From: Trichosphaerium sp. ATCC 40318
Taxonomy: Eukaryota > Protista > Tubulinea
DNA length: 64,000 bases
Direction of reading: 5' to 3'
NCBI GenBank assembly: GCA_038496445.1
Contig: JALMLS010000330.1
Location: 90,274-154,273 of the forward strand
How positions within the stretch are numbered: the stretch's first letter is position 1; every line of letters begins with the position of its first letter. A program made the translations under genes and the position numbers. The notes beneath the pieces are model-generated. The model saw only the letters and a list, made by a program, of their open reading frames with translations, did no database searches and had not been told where the DNA came from. This document shows positions 1 to 23,464 of the stretch, in pieces.

Positions 1-2741
1 CTGAAAACAAAGGGCGTACTTGATAGTATTGTTCCTTACTGACTGGGTCCGTTACTACCTTCACCACAATAATAACTGTTATATAATTGGATTTTACAGT
101 ATCAGGTTGATACGGTTCAGCACCTAACGCAAACGTATAAGAAAATGATTGATATAAACAAAAGGAACAAGCACAAATATTTAAACTAGTAATTGAAGAG
201 TCACTTACCTTCTTCTTGAAATACGAGCAACACAATGTCATTACCAATGTGACGCTTTTTGAATACCTAAGGATAACTTCACGTTAAAATAGTTTCCTAA
301 CACAAATACACATGCCTGTTGCTCATTCTTTTGTTGTTGAGGAAGAAGCGTTGATACATGCCACATTATTTCGTGACCTTTAAATGAGGAGTATACTGAT
401 TGCACACCAGTCGTATCCTCTAAACAAACATAAACATTGTAACAAATAAAGGTAAACCATAAAAAACTCTAAAACAATGTGTTCACAACAAGTATTCGAT
501 TAAAACTTTCCAAAAATGGTTTTAAACATACCCTTAGCATCTAATCCTCCAGTAAAACCCTCGAATCCTTTCAATTGAACGACATCGCCAATAAGTTTTA
601 AAAAACCGTCGTACAAAGCACTACCAGACGCTACATAAATTAGCATACACATATAGTGGTTTTTATTTATGTATCAAGCAAAATACTACGTACTGTTTTG
701 GAACATATCCTCCTCACGTGTTTGTCCTGGCTTGCAAAGCAGTATAGCAAACTTAAATTTATTTGTGACCTGCAGACGAACATTAGATGTTGTTACGTTA
801 AATCAATATTTAGCTAAAAATTACGTACCCTCATACCCTTATCCTTATCATCATATGCCATAAGCGTCTTGAAGACATCCAAGTTATTTTCACAAAGCTC
901 GAAACGTTTTTCTTTATGTTCTGGAACCAAAGCCTTTAGCAGTGTCAAACCCTGCAACGGTTCTTTCCAGTTTTCTAGAGTAACTCCCGATTCTAAACCA
1001 CCATCAACAAAACACTAATAATTCCGAACAAAAATAATATCTAACCTGCTAATTGGGACAGAGGTTTAAAATACTTGTTATTACCCTACAAATTCATTAG
1101 AATAATTTAACACAAGTTATAAACGTACATCCTTAGTGCGCACAATGGCACGAACCATTGGAGAGAACTCGTCCCGGCAAACCATAATTGACGCTACAAC
1201 AGGGTCTTTGGTGCCTGCACCAGCAAGATATGTGATATGGGCTAAAAAATGGTCGTTAGTCCCATTCAAAAAAAAAAAGATACTCAACGCACTGTCTTTA
1301 ATAAAATAGTTCTTAAACCACATTTTGTTCTCATGCCAGAAGTCTGTAGCATCGCTCTAAATTAAATAAATGAGCAAACTTTCGTTTTACAAAAAAATTC
1401 CAAAAAAAACGAACTTCTGAAGTGACATATTTGAACCCTTTATGCTCAGCAATAATTGGAGAAACAAGAGCCGAAAGATGCTCAGGTAAACTCTGTACTG
1501 TGCGCAATTTATCTTGAATAGTGCCTTTAAGCATTGACGGCTTCATTGTAGCATAATGACGCCTTCCAGGAGACATGGAGCTAGATCTACGCTTTTTACG
1601 TGTAATAGACGCTAAACATTATTAATAACTGTAAATAAACTGGCTGGCGCAATGCGATTGGCGTACTTGGAGGAGAAGCAGGGAAATTTCTTTGTCGTTG
1701 AGATTCATGAATTTCTGTTGACGCAGAGCCCTCTCCTCTTGGTAGTTTACCACGTAAGCTCATAGTATTACCGCGTAAGCTCATGGTATTACCGCGTGAG
1801 CTCGCGCCATTACCACGTAACATGTTACCACGCAAGCTCATATGCGATGCAGAGCGTTGATGTGGTTTTGGAGGAGGCCGAGGCTTTGGGGGTGGTAACG
1901 GTTTATTGTGACGCGTAGGTCGGTCTGAAGACGCGCGTTTGCGTGGTACTGGAGGTTTATATCCCTAAAACAATTTAAACACTAAACATACAATGGAAAT
2001 GACAAAAAGACCAAAAATGGAAAACAGCATTTAAAATCAACTTCTTTTTACGTACCAGTAGCCCAGGGTTACCTTTATCAAGCTTTCCTACACTGCTCGG
2101 TCCTCTATTACTAGTGACTCTGGCACTGTTTGGAGCATCGACAGCATTTCTTCTGAAGCGTCAATTGAAAAAATAGCGTAAAGTGCGCGTACGATCTGTT
2201 AGGAGAAGCTTGTCGATTACGTGCAGCTGAAGCTGGAAGTGGTGGAGTTTTGCTTGTTTGTGCTGGTTGTTGTCGTACTTGTGGGTGTACGGGTTGTTGT
2301 TTATACACTGACTGGCTTGGTGTTGGTGGGATTGGTGCCCTTTTTGTCGGCCGCTTTATGACGCGCACAAACCCTGCTGGAAACCATCCCTGAGCGTATT
2401 ATGAGAGGGATAACACTTGCACACGCGTTTTCGTACCTTTGTTCCATCTTGAAACACGCCGTGGTACCAGCCACCATCTTCTTTAGTCACTACAACAGTT
2501 TGGCCCTCAGCAATTGAGACTTCTCCTTCGCCTTCAGCACTAAAATCCTCGATGCAACGAACTGTGAACGGGAACTGTACATTGCCTACATAAGGAAGTA
2601 AGATTGATGTCCAGTTAAAGAATAGATATGCTAATACGCGCTCCTACAGTAATTGTAGTTTTGCACTAAATTGGGCTGTTTATTTTAGCTTGTTGTTGCA
2701 GTAGTGACATGAAAGCGAAAGAATAACGTACTGTGGTCCAT
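1..2741 (-). CDS. SH3 + proline-rich + Rap/Ran-GAP domain protein (multi-exon; 3' end runs off the window)
   Basis: Spliced start MDHSNVQFPFTVRCIEDFSAEGEGEVSIAEGQTVVVTKEDGGWYHGVFQDGTK-GWFPAGFV (SH3). Pro-rich middle. RapGAP motifs LKGFEGFTGGLD, EIMWHVSTLLP and FKKRHIGNDIVLLVFQE at about 215-620. Confidence 0.88.
1745..1841 (-). repeat. Imperfect 21-nt coding tandem repeat (MSLRGNT-like heptads)
   Basis: About 5 copies of ttacc(a/g)cgtaagctcat-like units inside the SH3-RapGAP gene. Confidence 0.7.
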
Positions 2742-3160
2742 GACGATCACTAATTCAATAACAAAGCGCAACCTTTAGGACGTGAGGTTTCTCTTTATCT
2801 TCAACAATATTAGTTTATCGAAAAGCGCTGGAGCATTTATGAAGTTGCGCAATTGGTTTTGGAAATAGTTGTAGCAATTGAACGTTTTTCAAAAAAACTA
2901 GCCGTGAAATTGTGAAAAAAAACGCGTCCTACGCAAGGGTATTGTTTTGGGCGAAGTAGCGGCTCTAATATTTTCATTCAAAACACGCTGCAAAGATCCA
3001 ATAAAAATAGTGCTGCACCAACCGTACCGATACTATGGTGTTGATATCGAGTGAGGCGTCATCACACTACTGGTGCGGTTACCGCTGGAGCGTATGGTCA
3101 GAATTGTTCAGCGCTAAGTCACCAATAAGCCGTAACTTGTTCTAAACCCAGCCTCACTCA

Positions 3161-4429: not shown

Positions 4430-6686
4430 ATTCATTGCAAACATTTCTACTCATTCAAAGCACGAGATAATCGAAAGCGATCCCAATCATGAAATCAATC
4501 AGATGTGGCCAATTTTTGCAAGTTTACAGCCACTAAAACACGATACAACGAGGATCTAGTCAAGCTTGGCATGTGGAAATCTTATTACGATGATGGAAAA
4601 CTGAAGAGTAGTAAGACATAGAGAACTTTTTGCTAAGTAGTTGAAAACCAAAAAAAAATTCGTTGTGGTTCACAAATGTTCGCTAGCAACTTCATATTAC
4701 GGCTACAATTAGACACAGTGCTGTTAAATGTACTACAAATGTACTAGTAACCAAAAACTATCACATGGCTGTAAATTCGTAAAAAACTGAAAAACGTGCT
4801 TTTGTTGATAATTTTCATTCGAATGGTAAACAGTTTCTGAAAGCCAAAGTCACTTTTCAATGGCGTCTTACTATACACACAGTATCTTACATTGTGTCAC
4901 GAAACTCCTGGGTTCAACTACAGATTACAACATAAAATATGGCAGACCGCAACCGCCTGTTTCTAAGGCAACGGAAATACATTTCCCTATATCCAGAAAG
5001 GGTGGTACCAAAGTTTCAAAACAGGCCTTGCTGGTCTACCCAATCTTTACACGAAACAAAATAAAAACGTTTTTGGTAAGATACAAATACGCACCAAACT
5101 TTAGGACATGCGATTCTATGCGTAGAAAAGAACAATAAGAAGAACTTACCTCGTTTATTCCAATTAGTCGTATCCACAGTACTCAAATATGTATATTAAA
5201 TCCACTACAACCTATTTAGTACTATAGTGACCTGCAAGAGTAAACAAGTGGTAGTGGTTCACGAAAAGTACGTTTTACAGTTTTTTAGCGCAAAAATGTG
5301 TCAACAAAGTTCTTGAATTAATTTCGCAGTTAGGTGCAATTATTGTACACTCTAATTTCGCTCAATGTGTTCTAAACGTATTATACATGCAGGCTATGCT
5401 TATCAACTACTTAGCAAAAAGTTCTCTAATAACGGAGAGTTACACGGGATTAGTAAGTCTTGGTATGAAAACACCAAGTTAAAATCACATATTCAGTATG
5501 TAAAAGGGAAAAGAGACGGGCAATTCAACCATTGGTACGAAAATGGCCAACAGCACATACAATGCCATTTTGTAAACGATATAAAAAGAAGGCGAGAACA
5601 AACACTGGAGCTCTAACGGACAGCTGTTGCGTCTCTTTCACTACAAGAACAATAAAAGAGCGGGAGAGTACAAAGAGTGGCGAGAAAGCGGACAATTGGA
5701 AAAGATATTCCACTATGTGAAGGTTGGAATGTGCACGTGGTTTAATGAAAATGGCCAAATGCAAAGTTGTTGCCCCTACATCAATGGCAAGAAGGAAGGG
5801 ACAAGAGTAGAATACTATAATAACGGTCAAGTAGAAGCACGTACAACCTACATCAATGGCGTAATGCACGGTGAGTTTAAGAATTGGTTTGAAAATGGTC
5901 AAGTGGTATCTCAAGGTAGTTATATCAATGACAAACGCAACGGAGAGATTAAGCGGTGGTTTCAAAGTGGGCAATTGCGTGACACATGGAACTATGTAGA
6001 AGGCAAACTCGAAGGCGAGAGTAAAAGATGGCACAATAACGGTCAACTAGCTGAACTTTCAAACTATGAGAATAATAAGCAGGAAGGAGTATATAAAAGG
6101 TGGTGCGCTAGTGGTAATTTAGGTATGTCGTAGTGAAGTCTTTTCCTCTAATAGTAAAGTAGAGCAGCATGGTCATTTCGCCAATGATAAGCCTCTATAC
6201 ACCATTATGTGGAATGACAAAGGCCAACTGAAGAGGTACCGTAATTACCGTACTGGCGAGAGGAAGATATGGCATGATAACGGCCAATTGGCAATACAAT
6301 TATTTATGATTAGCGGTAAGTTCGAAGGGAAGCACTTGTCATGGCACAAGAATGGTAAAATAAAGAGAATTACCACTTTTGTCAATGGCAAACAAGAAGG
6401 AGAGTTCACAATTTGGTATGAAAATGGCGAAAAGGAGGAACAAGGCCATCATATACGAAATGAGCTCAATGGTGAGATGAGGAGATGGTATGTAGATGGA
6501 AAATTGTATCAAGTTTATAACTACAGAGACGGTAAACTTGATGGAGAGTTCCAAGAATGGCAACAGAATGGTGTTTTGCGCAAAATTTGCAATTATGTCA
6601 ACAACAAGTGTGAAAGAGAGGATCTACGGCAAGAATCTAGCTCCTTTGAACCAGAAGTAATATGCAAGAACGATAAACAGATTTGA
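4430..6686 (+). pseudogene. F-box-like + MORN-variant (MORN2/YwqK-like) repeat gene, frameshifted
   Basis: Exon 1 reads KHEIIESDPNHEINQMWPI/CKFTATKTRYNEDLVKLGMWK with a -1 shift in a T run near 4515. A phase-1 intron (4611-5392) joins it to WYENG-type repeats. A +1 shift sits in an A run near 5585, and there is an intron at about 6123-6161. No clean in-frame start; homopolymer sequencing error is not excluded. Confidence 0.65.
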
Positions 6687-7070
6687 TAGCACAAAGGAAA
6701 AACGTATCTATTTGCAGAAGGTTGTATCGTTGAGATATTACAATAAACAATAAACTATACTAGATTATAGTTATATGCTGACTCTTGTTTCATTGTACAA
6801 TAGAACTATTTTGAGTTAGCTAGCCTGATTTTTCTGGATGGTCTGCAAGCTGTCCAATAGTGCATCCTTATGGATGACTTTACGCGAGCATAAGAGAAAG
6901 TCACGTGCGCTACAAATCGGGTGTAGCCTTCTAAAAAGTAGGCTTAACGTTAAAACAAAATAGCGTTATTTCAGGTCAATCCGTTTAAAATCTTGTGTCC
7001 GAACGTCAATTGCAGACCTTAATTGTAGCAGACTTAACATTTTTACTAGTAAGCTTGAAACGCTTCAAAA

Positions 7071-8627
7071 ATGGACTGCTTGGGCACTTCAATTGAGCAG
7101 GCACTCATATACTATTGTGAGAACCACAAAGATGAATACAGTAGAATTACTGCAGAACAACGCAAACCATTCCTAAAACAGCTTGAAAGTATCTTAAACA
7201 ATGCAAACAAGAGACTGATGTTACAACTTGACCAATATCTACTCCAAAACACTTGTACGACTAAACAGCGAGCAGAAAAGGTTGCCAAGGATATACATTC
7301 ACAACGTCATCGTGATACAAACACTGAAGAGCTAGCATTGCCTCAACATAAGCTAACAAGACAGTGCGCTATTCCTTATTGTTTATATCACTAACAGCTG
7401 CAAAAAAGTAGAACACAGACGACTATACAACACTCCACCATTCTCGATTTCCCCCCAGAGGTTATTTCAACTATCCTACATCAGGTAGATGCAAAATCAA
7501 GATTTATTGTTGTGCAAACTTGTCATATGATGGCTGATATTATTCATCATGTTGTTGGTTATGAAAAGATATTCATATATGACATTCCAGATATTCTAAA
7601 GGTTAGACAATACCAAGGTGTTATGAACAACACAATCGTTGTTTTGAATGTTGAAAACAATACTTTATTCTCATTGCTGTCAGGGTGTAAAAACGTTTCT
7701 GCTGAGTTCACAAGAAGTTCTGTAGCATTAATTGAGAAGAGTAGTGTTATAAATGACACTGACCTCAAAGCACTTGCAGGAGTTCATTACATTTATCTAA
7801 ATCGTTGTAAGCATATTACAGATGAAGGTATACGAGCATTGAGCGGTGTACATACCATAGTTCTTTCTATGACGTCAGTCACAGATGAAGGTATTAAAGC
7901 ACTTAAAGGTGTTCATAATATTTGCCTTTGTAGTTGTAAAAACGTGACGGATGAAGGCATCAAATCGCTTGCAGGAGTGCACACGATTGATGTAATGTTA
8001 TGTCCAAATGTGACGGATGAAGGCATCAAATGCTTAGCTGGTGTTCACCACATTGATCTTTCACGTACCTCAGTGACAGATAGGGGTGTAAAGTTCCTAG
8101 CTGGAGTTCACACAATCTACCTTTCTCGTACTTCAGTAACTGATGAGGGAATCAAATCACTCAAAGGAGTACACTCCATCTATCTTCAAGATGTACCTGT
8201 TTCAGATGAGGGTGTTAAAGCACTTGCAGGCGTTCATACTATTCATCTTGGAGATACATCAGTGACAGATGAAGGTATAAAATCACTCAAAGGAGTTTAT
8301 GCTATTGACCTTTCTCGCACATCAGTGACTGATGAAGGTGTCAAAGCATTGAAAGGAGTTCATGCAATTAATCTTGATGGCACATCAGTTACAGACGAAG
8401 GCATAAAAGCTCTAATAGGAGTCCATACTATTGGACTTCTAAATTGTGATCAAGTGACAAATGAAGGTATTAAAGTACTTGCAAGTGTACCAAGCCTGCA
8501 TGCTATTGAAAAGCCTTGGAGCTATAAACGTGACCCTGGACGCCCTAAGCATATTCAAATAGTTGTCTATCATCATTTGTTTATACAACGTGCTTTGAAA
8601 CTGTATTATAAAGGTCTGCCCTGTTAG
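7071..8627 (+). CDS. Helical N-terminal domain + F-box + LRR protein
   Basis: One intron (about 7364-7411, CTAAC branch) links the 7071 ORF to F-box ILDFPPEVISTILHQVDAKSRFIVVQTCHMM and about 12 repeats of LAGVHTIDLSRTSVTDEGIKA type. Confidence 0.85.
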
Positions 8628-19811: not shown

Positions 19812-22074
19812 TTAGTATGATCCACGACGTCTCATTGCTGCCAGCCTTTCCCTCTCTTTTCTCCTTCTCTCCTCTTCTTCAAGGTACTTCTTTCGTTCAT
19901 CCAACACTTTTTCGAATTCTCGTATGAGTAGAATACTGTTCCATGTCCTACACACTTGTCTTGCTCTTCCAATTGTTTTAGAATTGAAATTAGCAAATAC
20001 AAGAACTACTGCGTCTACTGGCATAAAAAGAGGTGAAGCAAAGTCTGGCATGCCAAGTTTTGGCCAGAATTTAGCCCAACTGTTTGCAAAATTTGTACTT
20101 GGTTGATAGCCAGGAATAACGTTATCAGTAGGTGCTATCTTATCAAGTATAAAGAGGCGGTAGTGAGAGAATATCATTTCTCTGAACTCTGCATACATTT
20201 CTCCAACTTGAATGGCATAATGATCTCTTACTGGTTGTACAATAATTGAATGAATATTGTCAAGCCTAAAAACAATTACATATCGGAACACATTGATCAA
20301 TTTTCTTTGTTCAATACACTCCAAATAAATGAATGCCCGAGCAGTGCAACAATGAAAAAACAAAAAGAAAAACAAGGATTAAGTTTTTCAGTTGCAACAA
20401 AGCAATAATAATCACAGTTGTCGTACGCTTTTCTGGCTTGTGCCTTACTAGAACCAAATTGTGGTGTCTTCGTTTTTTTAATAATGTTAGCTAACCTTCT
20501 ATCGTCTTCTTCGATAATAGCCTTTAAAAGATTGGAAAAAGGACCTGACCACATTCCTGTTTGTTTCTGAAAAAAAGAGGTCAGATTTTACCGTTTTTTC
20601 AAATGACCAATTATTCGCTGCTACATACCTTCCATCTTGAGCATACGAGGTATAATGGGTGGGCTTTATTTGAAGGCATCATTATTATTGCCCATATCCG
20701 TTCGAAGGCTTCCTTTTTCATGTCGGGAACAGAAATCTTATTTTCTTTGATTTCTTGTTGAATATCCATTGGAATATGTGCTATTTTGTCAAGTTTATCA
20801 TCGACACCGAGAAACTCTCTAAAAGGCCTTGTGTCTTTTGCAAATGCTGCTTCAAGGTAGGTTTTGTGTTTATCGAATTGAGCTTTGAGTGCGTTGTATA
20901 TAGCATTGAATTCCGCCAAGTGAATTTCGTTTTTTATTTTCTTCTTGAACGAGCTAACTTGTTTCATACGCATCAATTGCCAGACATATAGTGGGTATAT
21001 CTGCATAGCTAACTCGTGTCCATCAAGCCAAGACTCTCTTATATACTTTAAGCGTAACCCAGTATCAACAACGCGAACAACGTATCCTTAATAAAAAAGT
21101 TAAAATGAGAAGATTTCTAAAGTGCTTGCCTTCGGATCCTGTAGCTCGCCTGAGTTTTATTTTATCGTTCAATTTCTTCAAGCTTTGTACTTTTATAGGT
21201 TTGATAGATTTAACGCCAAGAGTATTTGCAATATCAATAACATCAGGTAAAGTGAGTTCGTATCCTTTATCGTCATAAACAGCCAAAAGAATCGGTTCTT
21301 GATGCAAAATGTTAAGTTAGCTTTTTTTCGTTTTAAGTACTGGTATTAACATGACGTACCCTCGAAGTCATATTCAACAACTACAGTGTTTTCTTTATAA
21401 ATGATTTCAAAGATATATGTCCAAGACTCTTTCATTTTCTCAAGTGCACCATGTTCCGTCAACCAAGCCTAAAATTGTTTGTTGTCAACAATTATTTTTG
21501 TTACATTTTTCTTTTAGTTTTACGTACAGCAGCCCATTTAGCCTGTGAGGAGTTCATGCGAGATTTCGTTGTGACACAAATCTTCCCTTTCCAAATGAAA
21601 GCAACGCCCATTGAGCCTAAAATAACGTTGACGGTAAGCACTTGATACCCTTTTTTCGTTTTTTGTATTAGTTCAATGATTTGGTCTTACCATCATATTT
21701 TTCTGTTACTTCTATTTTAGCGTCTTTAGCCATCGCAGATGTGAGGTTTTCTTCGATTTCGTTGTACCTAAAGAATTTTGGGAAGCCATGAGCTATCACT
21801 TTCCCTTCTTTGTGGTCTATGGTACGTAAGTTATTTGTTGCATGTATAATTAGGCTAAATATAAGTACATACCTACAACAAGACCTCTGCAGAGGCAACC
21901 AACTTGAAAGTCATTTGATGGTGTTATTGAGTCAAAAGCGTAGCGATATACAGATAAACCGCAGCCATCGTCGTACTTTACAATCTTTTTTTGCTCTAGT
22001 CCCTGTTTTAAAGCCTTTTCTAGATCCTCCCAAGGCATAGCACGCACAGGATGCTGCTTTAGATCCTTTGCCAT
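19812..22074 (-). CDS. T4 Rnl1 (RnlA)-family ATP-dependent RNA ligase with F-box-like motifs
   Basis: CRGLVV..VIAHGFPKFFRYNE; motif I VTEKYDG|SMG; TYIFEIIYKENTVVVEY; LLAVYD; motif IV E|GYVV; RLK. All joined by in-phase introns. C-terminal FMPVDAVVLVFANFNSKTIGRARQVCRTWNSIL is F-box-like. Confidence 0.82.
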
Positions 22075-22342
22075 TTTAGTACAACCAATCTGGTTTTGAG
22101 TTGACTTTTGGCATTTTAGCCGAAATTCGAGTGAACTTTGCAAAACGTTTTATCTTGTTCTTACCAGTGTCACGTGGCTTTTGTTATTGCGTCTTTTACG
22201 AAGGCCATGTGGTAGTCCACAAGCCAAACACTAAAGAATGTGTAGTGTTCAATGAACGTCAAACGGTTGAAAACGTGAAACATGGTTTTTGGCGATATAA
22301 CGTATTAAAGAACGTCGTGCTTGATATTAATGCTTGTTGGCA

Positions 22343-23464
22343 ATGTCTAAAGACAATTGGCGGGTAGTTCACTTTAAATGGTATAAGAATGCCAAAGACA
22401 TCACCGAAGTGCGTCTGTGCGGCTCTTGGGATAACTGGAAAGTAAATCAGCTGATAATGACAAAAGTTGTAAAATATTCAAAATCTGGTGATCTAGTCTC
22501 TTGTGTGTTTGGAGCAGGTTTAAACTTAGCACATGGCACGTACGAATACAAATTTGTTGTAGATGGCGTATGGCAGCATGATGACACCGCACCCACGCGG
22601 GTCGACGCCTCAGGTAACATAAACAACGTAATAACGATCCTAAAAGACTTTCAACATAAATATTATTTAAACAATCCTAAAACAACTCAAAATGATCCTT
22701 GTCGCACTTGTACAGATACAATAGGAACAATGGACGTAGTTATAAACTATTTAAAAGACGAGAATAAGTATGCCATTGAAGGCGCGATACCGCCTCTATT
22801 AAACCTACCACTTGAACTACAACATATGATTATAGACACTTCCAAAGAAGTTTATGTCAAATGGCCTGTACTGTGCTATGGTACAGCAGTAACTTCTCGA
22901 TTCAATAATAAACTTGAACGACATGGCACATGGAAAACAAGCGCACATGTTTGGTTTTATGAAGATGGAAAGGCGTGCAGAAAACATCAAATTTTCAAAA
23001 ATGGAGTTATTTTTTCATCATGCGATTATAACCTTGGTATGAGACATGGCGCTTATCGAAGATGGTACAAGTATACTCCTAAAATACTAGTATCTAATTG
23101 TTGCTATAGGTATGATAATGGGCAGCCTTGGCAGCAGTTGGAGTATAAAAATGGTAAAAAACATGGAAAGTCACAACATTGGTACAAAAATGGACAAATG
23201 ATGAAATTGAGGTTTTACAATAACGGTAAAATCATTGATAATACTTTATATTGGTATACTACTGGTGTGCTTAAAAGCTCAAGATGGTATATGAACGGGA
23301 AACAGCATGGAGAGGAGAAAAAGTGGTACACTAATGGATCTCTTGCTTTTTTAGCTTTGTATCATCATGGAACGGTTACTGCTACTCCACAGTGTTGGAC
23401 ACGTGCTGGAAGACCTACAGCACGAGTTTTCCTTGTACGTAGGCGTATAAGGAGGAGAAGATGA
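22343..23464 (+). CDS. CBM48 (AMPK-beta-type glycogen-binding) + F-box-like + MORN2 repeat protein (intronless)
   Basis: FKW..EVRLCGSWDNWK..GTYEYKFVVDGVWQHD..DASGNINNVI; LLNLPLELQHMII..KWPVLC; HGKSQHWYKNGQ-type repeats. Confidence 0.85.
   Translation: MSKDNWRVVHFKWYKNAKDITEVRLCGSWDNWKVNQLIMTKVVKYSKSGDLVSCVFGAGLNLAHGTYEYKFVVDGVWQHDDTAPTRVDASGNINNVITILKDFQHKYYLNNPKTTQNDPCRTCTDTIGTMDVVINYLKDENKYAIEGAIPPLLNLPLELQHMIIDTSKEVYVKWPVLCYGTAVTSRFNNKLERHGTWKTSAHVWFYEDGKACRKHQIFKNGVIFSSCDYNLGMRHGAYRRWYKYTPKILVSNCCYRYDNGQPWQQLEYKNGKKHGKSQHWYKNGQMMKLRFYNNGKIIDNTLYWYTTGVLKSSRWYMNGKQHGEEKKWYTNGSLAFLALYHHGTVTATPQCWTRAGRPTARVFLVRRRIRRRR

Follow-up and report, generated by a model that had tools for sequence, protein, structure and literature searches.

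A 64,000-nucleotide stretch of contig JALMLS010000330.1 of the protist Trichosphaerium sp. ATCC 40318 (the window, hereafter) raises an unusual question. Between positions 22074 and 19812, on its minus strand, it carries what looks like a single gene combining the motifs of a T4 Rnl1-type RNA ligase with an F-box. Is this combination genuine, and if so, what might such a protein do? T4 Rnl1-type ligases are repair or splicing enzymes that act with end-healing partners, and F-boxes are plugs into Skp1-cullin-F-box (SCF) ubiquitin ligases; we know of no RNA ligase that carries an F-box. An earlier note, written from the DNA letters alone, had proposed an intron-containing, horizontally acquired Rnl1-type nucleotidyltransferase that continues into two F-box-like segments and a charged tail. 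Comparisons with paralogs and distant relatives lead us to judge the ligase/F-box fusion genuine, and it coincides exactly with the loss of a lysine residue that is otherwise invariant in the ligase family.

Domains of the predicted protein

Three-frame reading of the minus strand from 22200 to 19700, together with splice-site bookkeeping, placed the start codon of the gene at 22074 and the end of its TAA stop codon at 19812. The model comprises eight exons, all of them open, and seven introns, with a coding sequence of 1674 nucleotides (558 codons, plus the stop) that remains in one frame throughout; the count of about seven introns given in the earlier note was thus accurate. Six of the introns are of the GT-AG type and one is GC-AG; six measure 43-74 nucleotides and the remaining one, intron 7, 230 nucleotides. 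In addition to the splice bookkeeping, the gene as a whole (19812..22074) is delineated by colinear matches to paralogs and to contiguous relatives. The evidence for it consists of exon-by-exon searches and folds and of these natural contiguous relatives.

Exons 1 to 6 are predicted to encode an Rnl1-type adenylyltransferase related to the Pfam family RNA_lig_T4_1 (PF09511). Exon 2 (21691..21816) alone matches this family with 18.3 bits (E 0.002; 18.3-19 bits across single-exon and six-frame genome searches), the curated cut-off of 28.3 bits being out of reach for single exons. We ran a profile of our own, made from T4 Rnl1 as found in the T4 record and three canonical PF09511 proteins, on all 2069 stop-to-stop frames of the window. 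Exons 4, 2 and 3 ranked at the top (E 1.9e-5, 3.7e-5 and 6.7e-4, respectively), followed by exons 1 and 6, and all five are colinear on the profile, so that the matches to ligase motifs are not due to chance. Among 128 collected proteins, nearly all of them canonical RNA_lig_T4_1 ligases, 72 are matched by exon 2 and 126 by exon 4.

Alignment of the fragments with T4 Rnl1 (PDB 2C5U, 5TT6, 9DO4) showed that the N-terminal sub-domain, motifs I, Ia, III and IV and the first lysine of motif V correspond residue for residue, at very low overall identity. Exon 1 (21873..22074) holds the start codon and the N-terminal Rnl1-like sub-domain, recognized by this alignment, by a weak colinear profile match (positions 9-62 of the hidden Markov model) and by paralog matches; its CRGLVV stretch (21874-21891) aligns to ECRGIMF of T4 Rnl1 and provides the equivalent of Arg54. 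In exon 2, FPKFF (21770-21784) aligns to MEKFFNL, which accounts for Lys75 and Phe77, and motif I, EKYDG (21692-21703), aligns to TKEDGS, with the nucleophile lysine inside the motif and its serine beyond intron 2 (EKYDG/S). Exon 3 (21528..21616) covers the motif Ia region; it was recognized by our profile, its best matches are two relatives described below, P0003 and P0004 (E ~1e-8), and its TTKS (21561-21572) aligns to SKGS with the equivalent of Lys119. Motif III lies in exon 4 (21360..21468), whose FEII (21400-21411) aligns to FEFV with the equivalent of Glu159. Exon 5 (21130..21297), delimited by splice bookkeeping, encodes a variable insert of the nucleotidyltransferase domain and ends on the glutamate of motif IV. 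The 43-nucleotide intron 5 (21087-21129), which has the GC donor (gcaagc...aag), splits that motif (E/GYVV, EGYV in T4 Rnl1). Exon 6 (20629..21086) follows with the rest of motif IV, motif V, an IYPLYVWQLMR helix (20968-21000) and a helical C-region, as assigned by alignment, an AlphaFold model and a structural search. The motifs listed in the earlier note (KFF, EKYDGS, FEII and EGYVV) were all recovered and are colinear on our profile, and its intron-containing Rnl1-type nucleotidyltransferase is borne out by the exon-wise Pfam and profile matches. The equivalents of Arg54, Lys75, Phe77, Lys99, Gly102, Lys119, Glu159, Glu227, Gly228 and Lys240 are kept, i.e. 10 of the 11 catalytic positions of T4 Rnl1 that we compared; the exception is the second lysine of motif V.

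Motif V (21037-21054, in exon 6) reads RLKYIR, with an isoleucine in place of the second lysine. That this lysine is missing had been pointed out in the earlier note, and no other detail of the gene proved as telling; we found in addition that it is lost throughout the clade of ligases linked to F-boxes, with isoleucine, valine or threonine at this position in 12 of 12 aligned members, whereas all 49 canonical relatives have lysine. In T4 Rnl1, both lysines of the motif, Lys240 and Lys242, are essential. The two motif V lysines of the fungal ligase Trl1-LIG touch the alpha-phosphate of ATP (PMC6379707). The K227Q variant of T4 Rnl2 keeps phosphodiester formation (step 3) on pre-adenylylated donors and loses adenylyl transfer (PMC3149579). 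The clade-wide loss of the second lysine thus predicts weakened ATP-dependent self-adenylylation, and by analogy with the Rnl2 variant the sealing of pre-activated ends could survive it. The same catalytic position is lost in both cases; however, Rnl2 is another ligase family and its glutamine was engineered, in contrast with the natural isoleucine or valine, and the analogy is inference only.

The helical region after motif V was modelled with high confidence, the AlphaFold model of exon 6 (from a 62-row alignment) having a predicted local distance difference test (pLDDT) score of 94-97 across residues 1-80. A VIA-align search of 48,161 chains with this model returned first the C-domain of T4 Rnl1 (residues 254-374; Z 5.0, root-mean-square deviation 2.9 A over 77 residues), followed by an unrelated chain with Z 4.7; values of Z below 8 are common for helical models. 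A Foldseek search with the same model gave nothing significant, and a phmmer search of exon 6 against PDB sequences gave chance matches only. The modelled region thus weakly resembles the C-domain of T4 Rnl1. As it is the domain appended to the nucleotidyltransferase core that defines each Rnl family (PMC6379707), and as the likeness of the C-domain is marginal, 'Rnl1-type adenylyltransferase' is the safe description, and we do not claim strict membership of Rnl1.

Exon 8 (19812..20265, coding from 20265 to 19815 and followed by TAA) encodes a helical stretch, the motif IAP..N.IPGY.PS.NF..W.K.W (20064-20138), which is kept in the tail of the family, an F-box (MPVDAVV...CRTWN, 19926-20024) and a charged helix that ends in GSY (19815-19919). 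The F-box matches PF00646 with 26.0 bits (E 8e-6), above the cut-off of 20.5 bits. The proposed continuation of the ligase into an F-box and a charged tail is therefore borne out. The protein is predicted to have one F-box only, at its C-terminus: of the two that had been proposed, the second is this one and the first did not stand. The latter corresponds to the last 25 codons of exon 6 (ERIWAII...SRWK, 20629-20703), and we rejected it since it has no Pfam match at E<=10, is missing from the paralogs, is modelled with a pLDDT of ~40 and aligns to an ordinary linker of the Physarum relative.

The C-terminal ends of the family, after the charged helix, are short and rich in glycine and tyrosine: GSY here (19815-19830), and YYRYYG, RRYG, GYNSYG, GSGSY or GGYSS elsewhere.

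Conservation of the fusion

If the fusion is genuine, are there other genes like it? Five other loci of the 70-Mb assembly, which we designate by their contigs (C109, C27, C95, C80 and C112), each hold an exon-6-like and an exon-8-like piece, with their order unchanged and both on one strand. The exon 8 tail is therefore common to six loci of the genome, and the tails of all five paralogs exceed the PF00646 cut-off. The positions of introns vary between paralogs: all five have the counterparts of exons 3 and 4 in one unbroken piece, as C109 does for those of exons 1 and 2.

Outside this genome, a profile of exon-6-like sequences run against 1.84 billion representative proteins gave four matches. 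Two of them are real, namely P0003, a transcript product of Physarum polycephalum (EukProt), and P0004, from a metagenome contig; P0001 and P0002 were discarded as false positives due to repeats or low complexity. A word search started from P0004 added the metagenomic proteins P0129-P0133. These relatives are ~25-55% identical to the exons of the window and have the second motif V lysine replaced. They are contiguous: a single open frame runs from the ligase through a helical linker and a GY.PS..F.QT..KGW motif to an F-box or F-box-like segment, and closes with a Tyr/Gly-rich end. The PF09511 cut-off is exceeded by P0131 (30.6 bits) and P0132 (42.2 bits), and among solved ligases T4 Rnl1 matches P0003 best. 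The F-box of P0130 exceeds the Pfam cut-off, and exon 8 matches residues 989-1079 of this protein (E 1e-8). Most relatives differ from the Trichosphaerium gene in that their ligase is preceded by two further domains, a P-loop kinase and a capping-enzyme-like nucleotidyltransferase (PF01331); P0132 apparently extends from ligase to tail only, as does the Trichosphaerium gene.

The capping-enzyme-like domain of P0003 and P0004 is also devoid of the second lysine of its motif V, which reads KWQP versus KWKP in Candida Cgt1. Both nucleotidyltransferase domains of these proteins thus bear the same kind of change.

Because the five paralogs keep the order of the two parts and the contiguous relatives hold both in one frame, we judge the fusion to be genuine. 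By the same comparisons, the gene belongs to a small, unstudied protein family rather than being a one-off. The earlier note had stated that no such architecture was known. The pairing is not unique, since it is shared by five paralogs, a Physarum transcript and several metagenomic proteins; as for the published record, our literature search (the scope of which did not include the 2016 RNA-repair survey by Burroughs and Aravind) found no paper joining RNA ligase, Rnl1 or PF09511 with an F-box. A conserved and selected fusion of an RNA ligase with an F-box is thus absent from the searchable literature.

The canonical RNA_lig_T4_1 ligases, i.e. stand-alone bacterial proteins and ligase-PNKP fusions of bacteria, chytrids and metagenomes (P0005-P0128; L026, open reading frame 5983-7152), share with the F-box-linked clade the EK.DGSLG, FE.IYP.N...DY and EG.V.R signature and also possess the helix after motif V. 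In contrast, they keep the K-x-K of motif V (49/49) and are combined with kinase or phosphatase healing domains, or with nothing. This sub-family is very large: a word search with one canonical query, P0007, gave 3294 matches at E<=1e-5, mostly stand-alone ligases of ~345 residues or ligase-PNKP fusions, including those of chytrid fungi, and none of the best 120 of them has an F-box. T4 Rnl1 itself differs from the Trichosphaerium protein in having no F-box, GY.PS.NF motif or introns.

The other RNA_lig_T4_1 loci of the genome (on contigs C37, C84, C13, C5 and C35) were considered as family members and rejected, as none has the tail. Two of them have noteworthy neighbours. The C37 locus (L021, G000:C37:50500-54700), which has the best Pfam RNA_lig_T4_1 score of the genome, is followed ~600 nucleotides downstream on the same strand by a frame with its own ATG that encodes an F-box and leucine-rich repeats (open reading frame 624-1652, minus strand). 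This frame could represent a gene of its own or one more case of a ligase-F-box arrangement. At the C5 locus (L024, G000:C5:113000-117500), an RNA_lig_T4_1-like gene precedes, on the same strand, a frame resembling poly(A) polymerases and terminal uridylyltransferases (open reading frame 2467-2802, plus strand), which could be a neighbouring gene or part of a ligase-nucleotidyltransferase fusion.

Possible functions of the protein

What might a ligase attached to an F-box do? In order, the predicted protein has an Rnl1-type adenylyltransferase, a helical region, the GY.PS.NF..W motif, a C-terminal F-box and a charged helix. We propose that it is an atypical enzyme that binds or seals RNA ends and is docked by its F-box to Skp1 and the SCF ubiquitin ligase, a reading to which we give a probability of roughly 0.5. 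In this view, broken or 5'-activated RNA would be engaged by the ligase domain, and the F-box, by plugging the protein into Skp1 and thereby into SCF, would direct ubiquitination at the enzyme or at proteins that sit on such RNA. Our comparisons show the domain composition, the fusion, the lysine loss and the family with its relatives; that the protein binds RNA or Skp1, performs any catalysis or is linked with ubiquitination is what we infer. In the seven database members of the clade, the Lys, Asp and Gly of motif I, the Glu of motif III, the Glu-Gly of motif IV and the Arg and first Lys of motif V are invariant. This argues that most members, the Trichosphaerium copy among them, still make use of a nucleotidyl-transfer step of some kind. 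The conserved C-terminal F-box, in turn, predicts docking to Skp1, and genes for Skp1 domains are present in the genome (best score 99 bits).

Enzymes that carry an F-box in the same polypeptide include the DNA helicase FBH1 (FBXO18) and the demethylases KDM2A/B (FBXL11/10). They differ from the Trichosphaerium protein in belonging to other enzyme classes and in the position of their F-box, which is not at the extreme C-terminus. By analogy, they may serve as precedents for an enzyme that doubles as an SCF subunit. A bolder version of our proposal is that a small eukaryotic clade (Trichosphaerium, Physarum and uncultured relatives) turned an Rnl1-type ligase into an SCF subunit guided by RNA breaks, trading ATP-dependent self-adenylylation for the recognition or sealing of broken or pre-activated ends, a trade of which the lost motif V lysine would be the mark, while its F-box has proteins stalled on the RNA ubiquitinated. 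We regard this full scenario as rather unlikely.

If an SCF-docked ligase domain does sense or seal damaged RNA, it would connect RNA damage with protein turnover by a new route, and do so through a direct enzymatic link; in the relatives, the fusion moreover sits behind a kinase and a capping-enzyme-like domain. If the protein is merely a regulated repair enzyme, the family would still offer a natural experiment on the second lysine of motif V and a set of selected natural pseudo-ligases.

Several observations weigh against an SCF-docked RNA-end enzyme. The F-box scores 24.1 bits with the F-box-like family PF12937, just below the cut-off of 24.3 bits. The model of exon 8 has an overall pLDDT of 59, with helices at residues 83-90, 95-104 and 106-112 reaching 65-70. 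A Foldseek search with it listed Skp1/F-box complexes in its five best rows and in most of the remaining ones, with E exceeding 2 throughout; structure thus adds little to the case for the F-box. The linker that joins exons 6, 7 and 8, placed on splice consensus alone, is uncertain. Exon 7 (20496..20566), a mini-exon of 23 codons and 2 nucleotides inferred from frame and splice consensus only, is the least certain part of the model. It has no counterpart in the paralogs, and alternative donors and acceptors exist between exons 6 and 8. With intron 6 retained, translation would end six codons on and yield a ligase-only product. In addition, the search with the exon-6-like profile revealed no protein from Trichosphaerium, and hence no transcript-derived product, among the 1.84 billion representative proteins. 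Finally, the finding is tempered by the habit of this genome of attaching F-boxes to very many proteins. With PF12937 we obtained 1809 first-look candidates, a very large expansion for 70 Mb, and all 150 that were scored exceed the cut-off; an F-box here may thus say little about a specific function.

The paralogs suggest another possibility, namely that the protein is a pure pseudo-enzyme receptor, whose ligase fold performs no chemistry and, within an SCF F-box protein, has substrate binding as its sole task. Typical F-box proteins do use their other domain as a substrate receptor, and the clade as a whole has lost a catalytic lysine that is otherwise invariant. C95 and C80 lack in addition the equivalents of Arg54, Lys75, Lys119 and Lys240 and keep the F-box and the tail motif, and C112 looks still more degenerate according to a partial check. 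The ratio of nonsynonymous to synonymous substitution rates (dN/dS) between C95 and C80 is 0.16 over 323 codons, with dS ~1.0, which indicates that they are selected proteins under purifying selection. Thus, further ATP-contacting residues are gone from at least two of the six paralogs, yet purifying selection operates and the F-box is kept. Fold and tail appear to matter even where the chemistry is gone, which points to a non-catalytic role of the fold in these two proteins. However, the nucleophile lysine and motifs Ia, III and IV are kept in the Trichosphaerium copy studied here, in C27 and C109 (which retain the catalytic positions except for an alanine replacing the glycine beside the Arg54 equivalent in C27) and in all database members of the clade. 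It is difficult to see why these would be retained if no nucleotidyl-transfer step remained, and we give a purely non-catalytic receptor a low, if appreciable, probability.

At the opposite end, and as the earlier note had proposed, the protein might be a conventional RNA-repair ligase with full activity (directed, to give a speculative example, at damage by ribotoxins). Its F-box would then only tune its stability or be irrelevant, and the missing lysine would have to be compensated for, e.g. by the arginine that follows. The retention of 10 of the 11 catalytic positions compared is in keeping with this idea, as is the presence of a basic residue (R or K) directly after the substituted position in the Trichosphaerium copy, C109, C27 and C95. 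Free-living protists also expand their Rnl1-family ligases, the amoeboid Naegleria having seven of them (PMC4408790), and bdelloid rotifers up-regulate acquired RNA ligases under fungal attack (bioRxiv 10.1101/2021.09.04.458992). However, the basic residue is not conserved in the wider clade, the database members having S, T, Y, N or H at this position. Within the family tail, conservation is highest in the F-box and the motif that precedes it, an argument for the importance of both. Healing partners are not apparent either. T4 Rnl1 works with Pnkp, a partner that the earlier note had suggested looking for, and a six-frame search of the 70-Mb assembly gave no match to the T4-type PNKP phosphatase domain HAD_PNKP (PF25109) at E<=0.01; with genes split into exons such an absence is not proof, and kinase-only partners were not searched for. 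Similarly, the kinase and capping halves of P0003 and P0130 had no match in the genome search. We therefore find a standard repair ligase unlikely.

Integrity and origin of the gene

Another possibility is that the ligase exons and the F-box exon belong to separate transcripts, or that the gene is a decaying copy. The lack of conservation of exon 7, the stop six codons beyond the exon 6 donor and the failure to find a transcript-derived protein among the representative proteins can all be read in this way, as can the GC donor of intron 5 and the length of intron 7, three to five times that of the others. Yet all eight exons are open, and the five paralogs likewise place the tail behind the ligase, on one strand. 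The Physarum transcript and the other contiguous relatives encode both parts in one frame. As for the unusual donor, the open frame of C27 continues as ...NTEG and then T, i.e. with a GT after the split glycine codon, as would be expected if this paralog had a GT donor where the GC-AG intron lies. Separate transcripts or decay are thus very unlikely.

Was the gene taken up recently from a phage, a bacterium or a giant virus, in line with the horizontal acquisition proposed in the earlier note? Bacteria, phages and viruses supply the bulk of the RNA_lig_T4_1 family, and a language model places the Physarum module next to viral RNA_lig_T4_1 clusters, which we treat as a lead only. The nearest relatives of the F-box clade outside it are, however, merely ~28-31% identical to it. 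Searches with clade-specific patterns found no relative in a collection of viral contigs and, in bacterial and archaeal genomes, a single protein, a canonical stand-alone K-I-K ligase devoid of the tail in a verrucomicrobial metagenome-assembled genome. Given also the seven introns, the uniform GC content across the window, the six diverged paralogs with their differing intron positions and the module shared with a slime mould, a recent acquisition is not supported by these comparisons and appears extremely improbable. These arguments bear on a recent event; an ancient transfer may have occurred.

Upstream of the ligase gene, 260 nucleotides from its start and in divergent orientation, lies a single open frame (22334-23464, plus strand) that encodes first an AMPK-type glycogen-binding module (PF16561, 64 bits) and then MORN_2 repeats.

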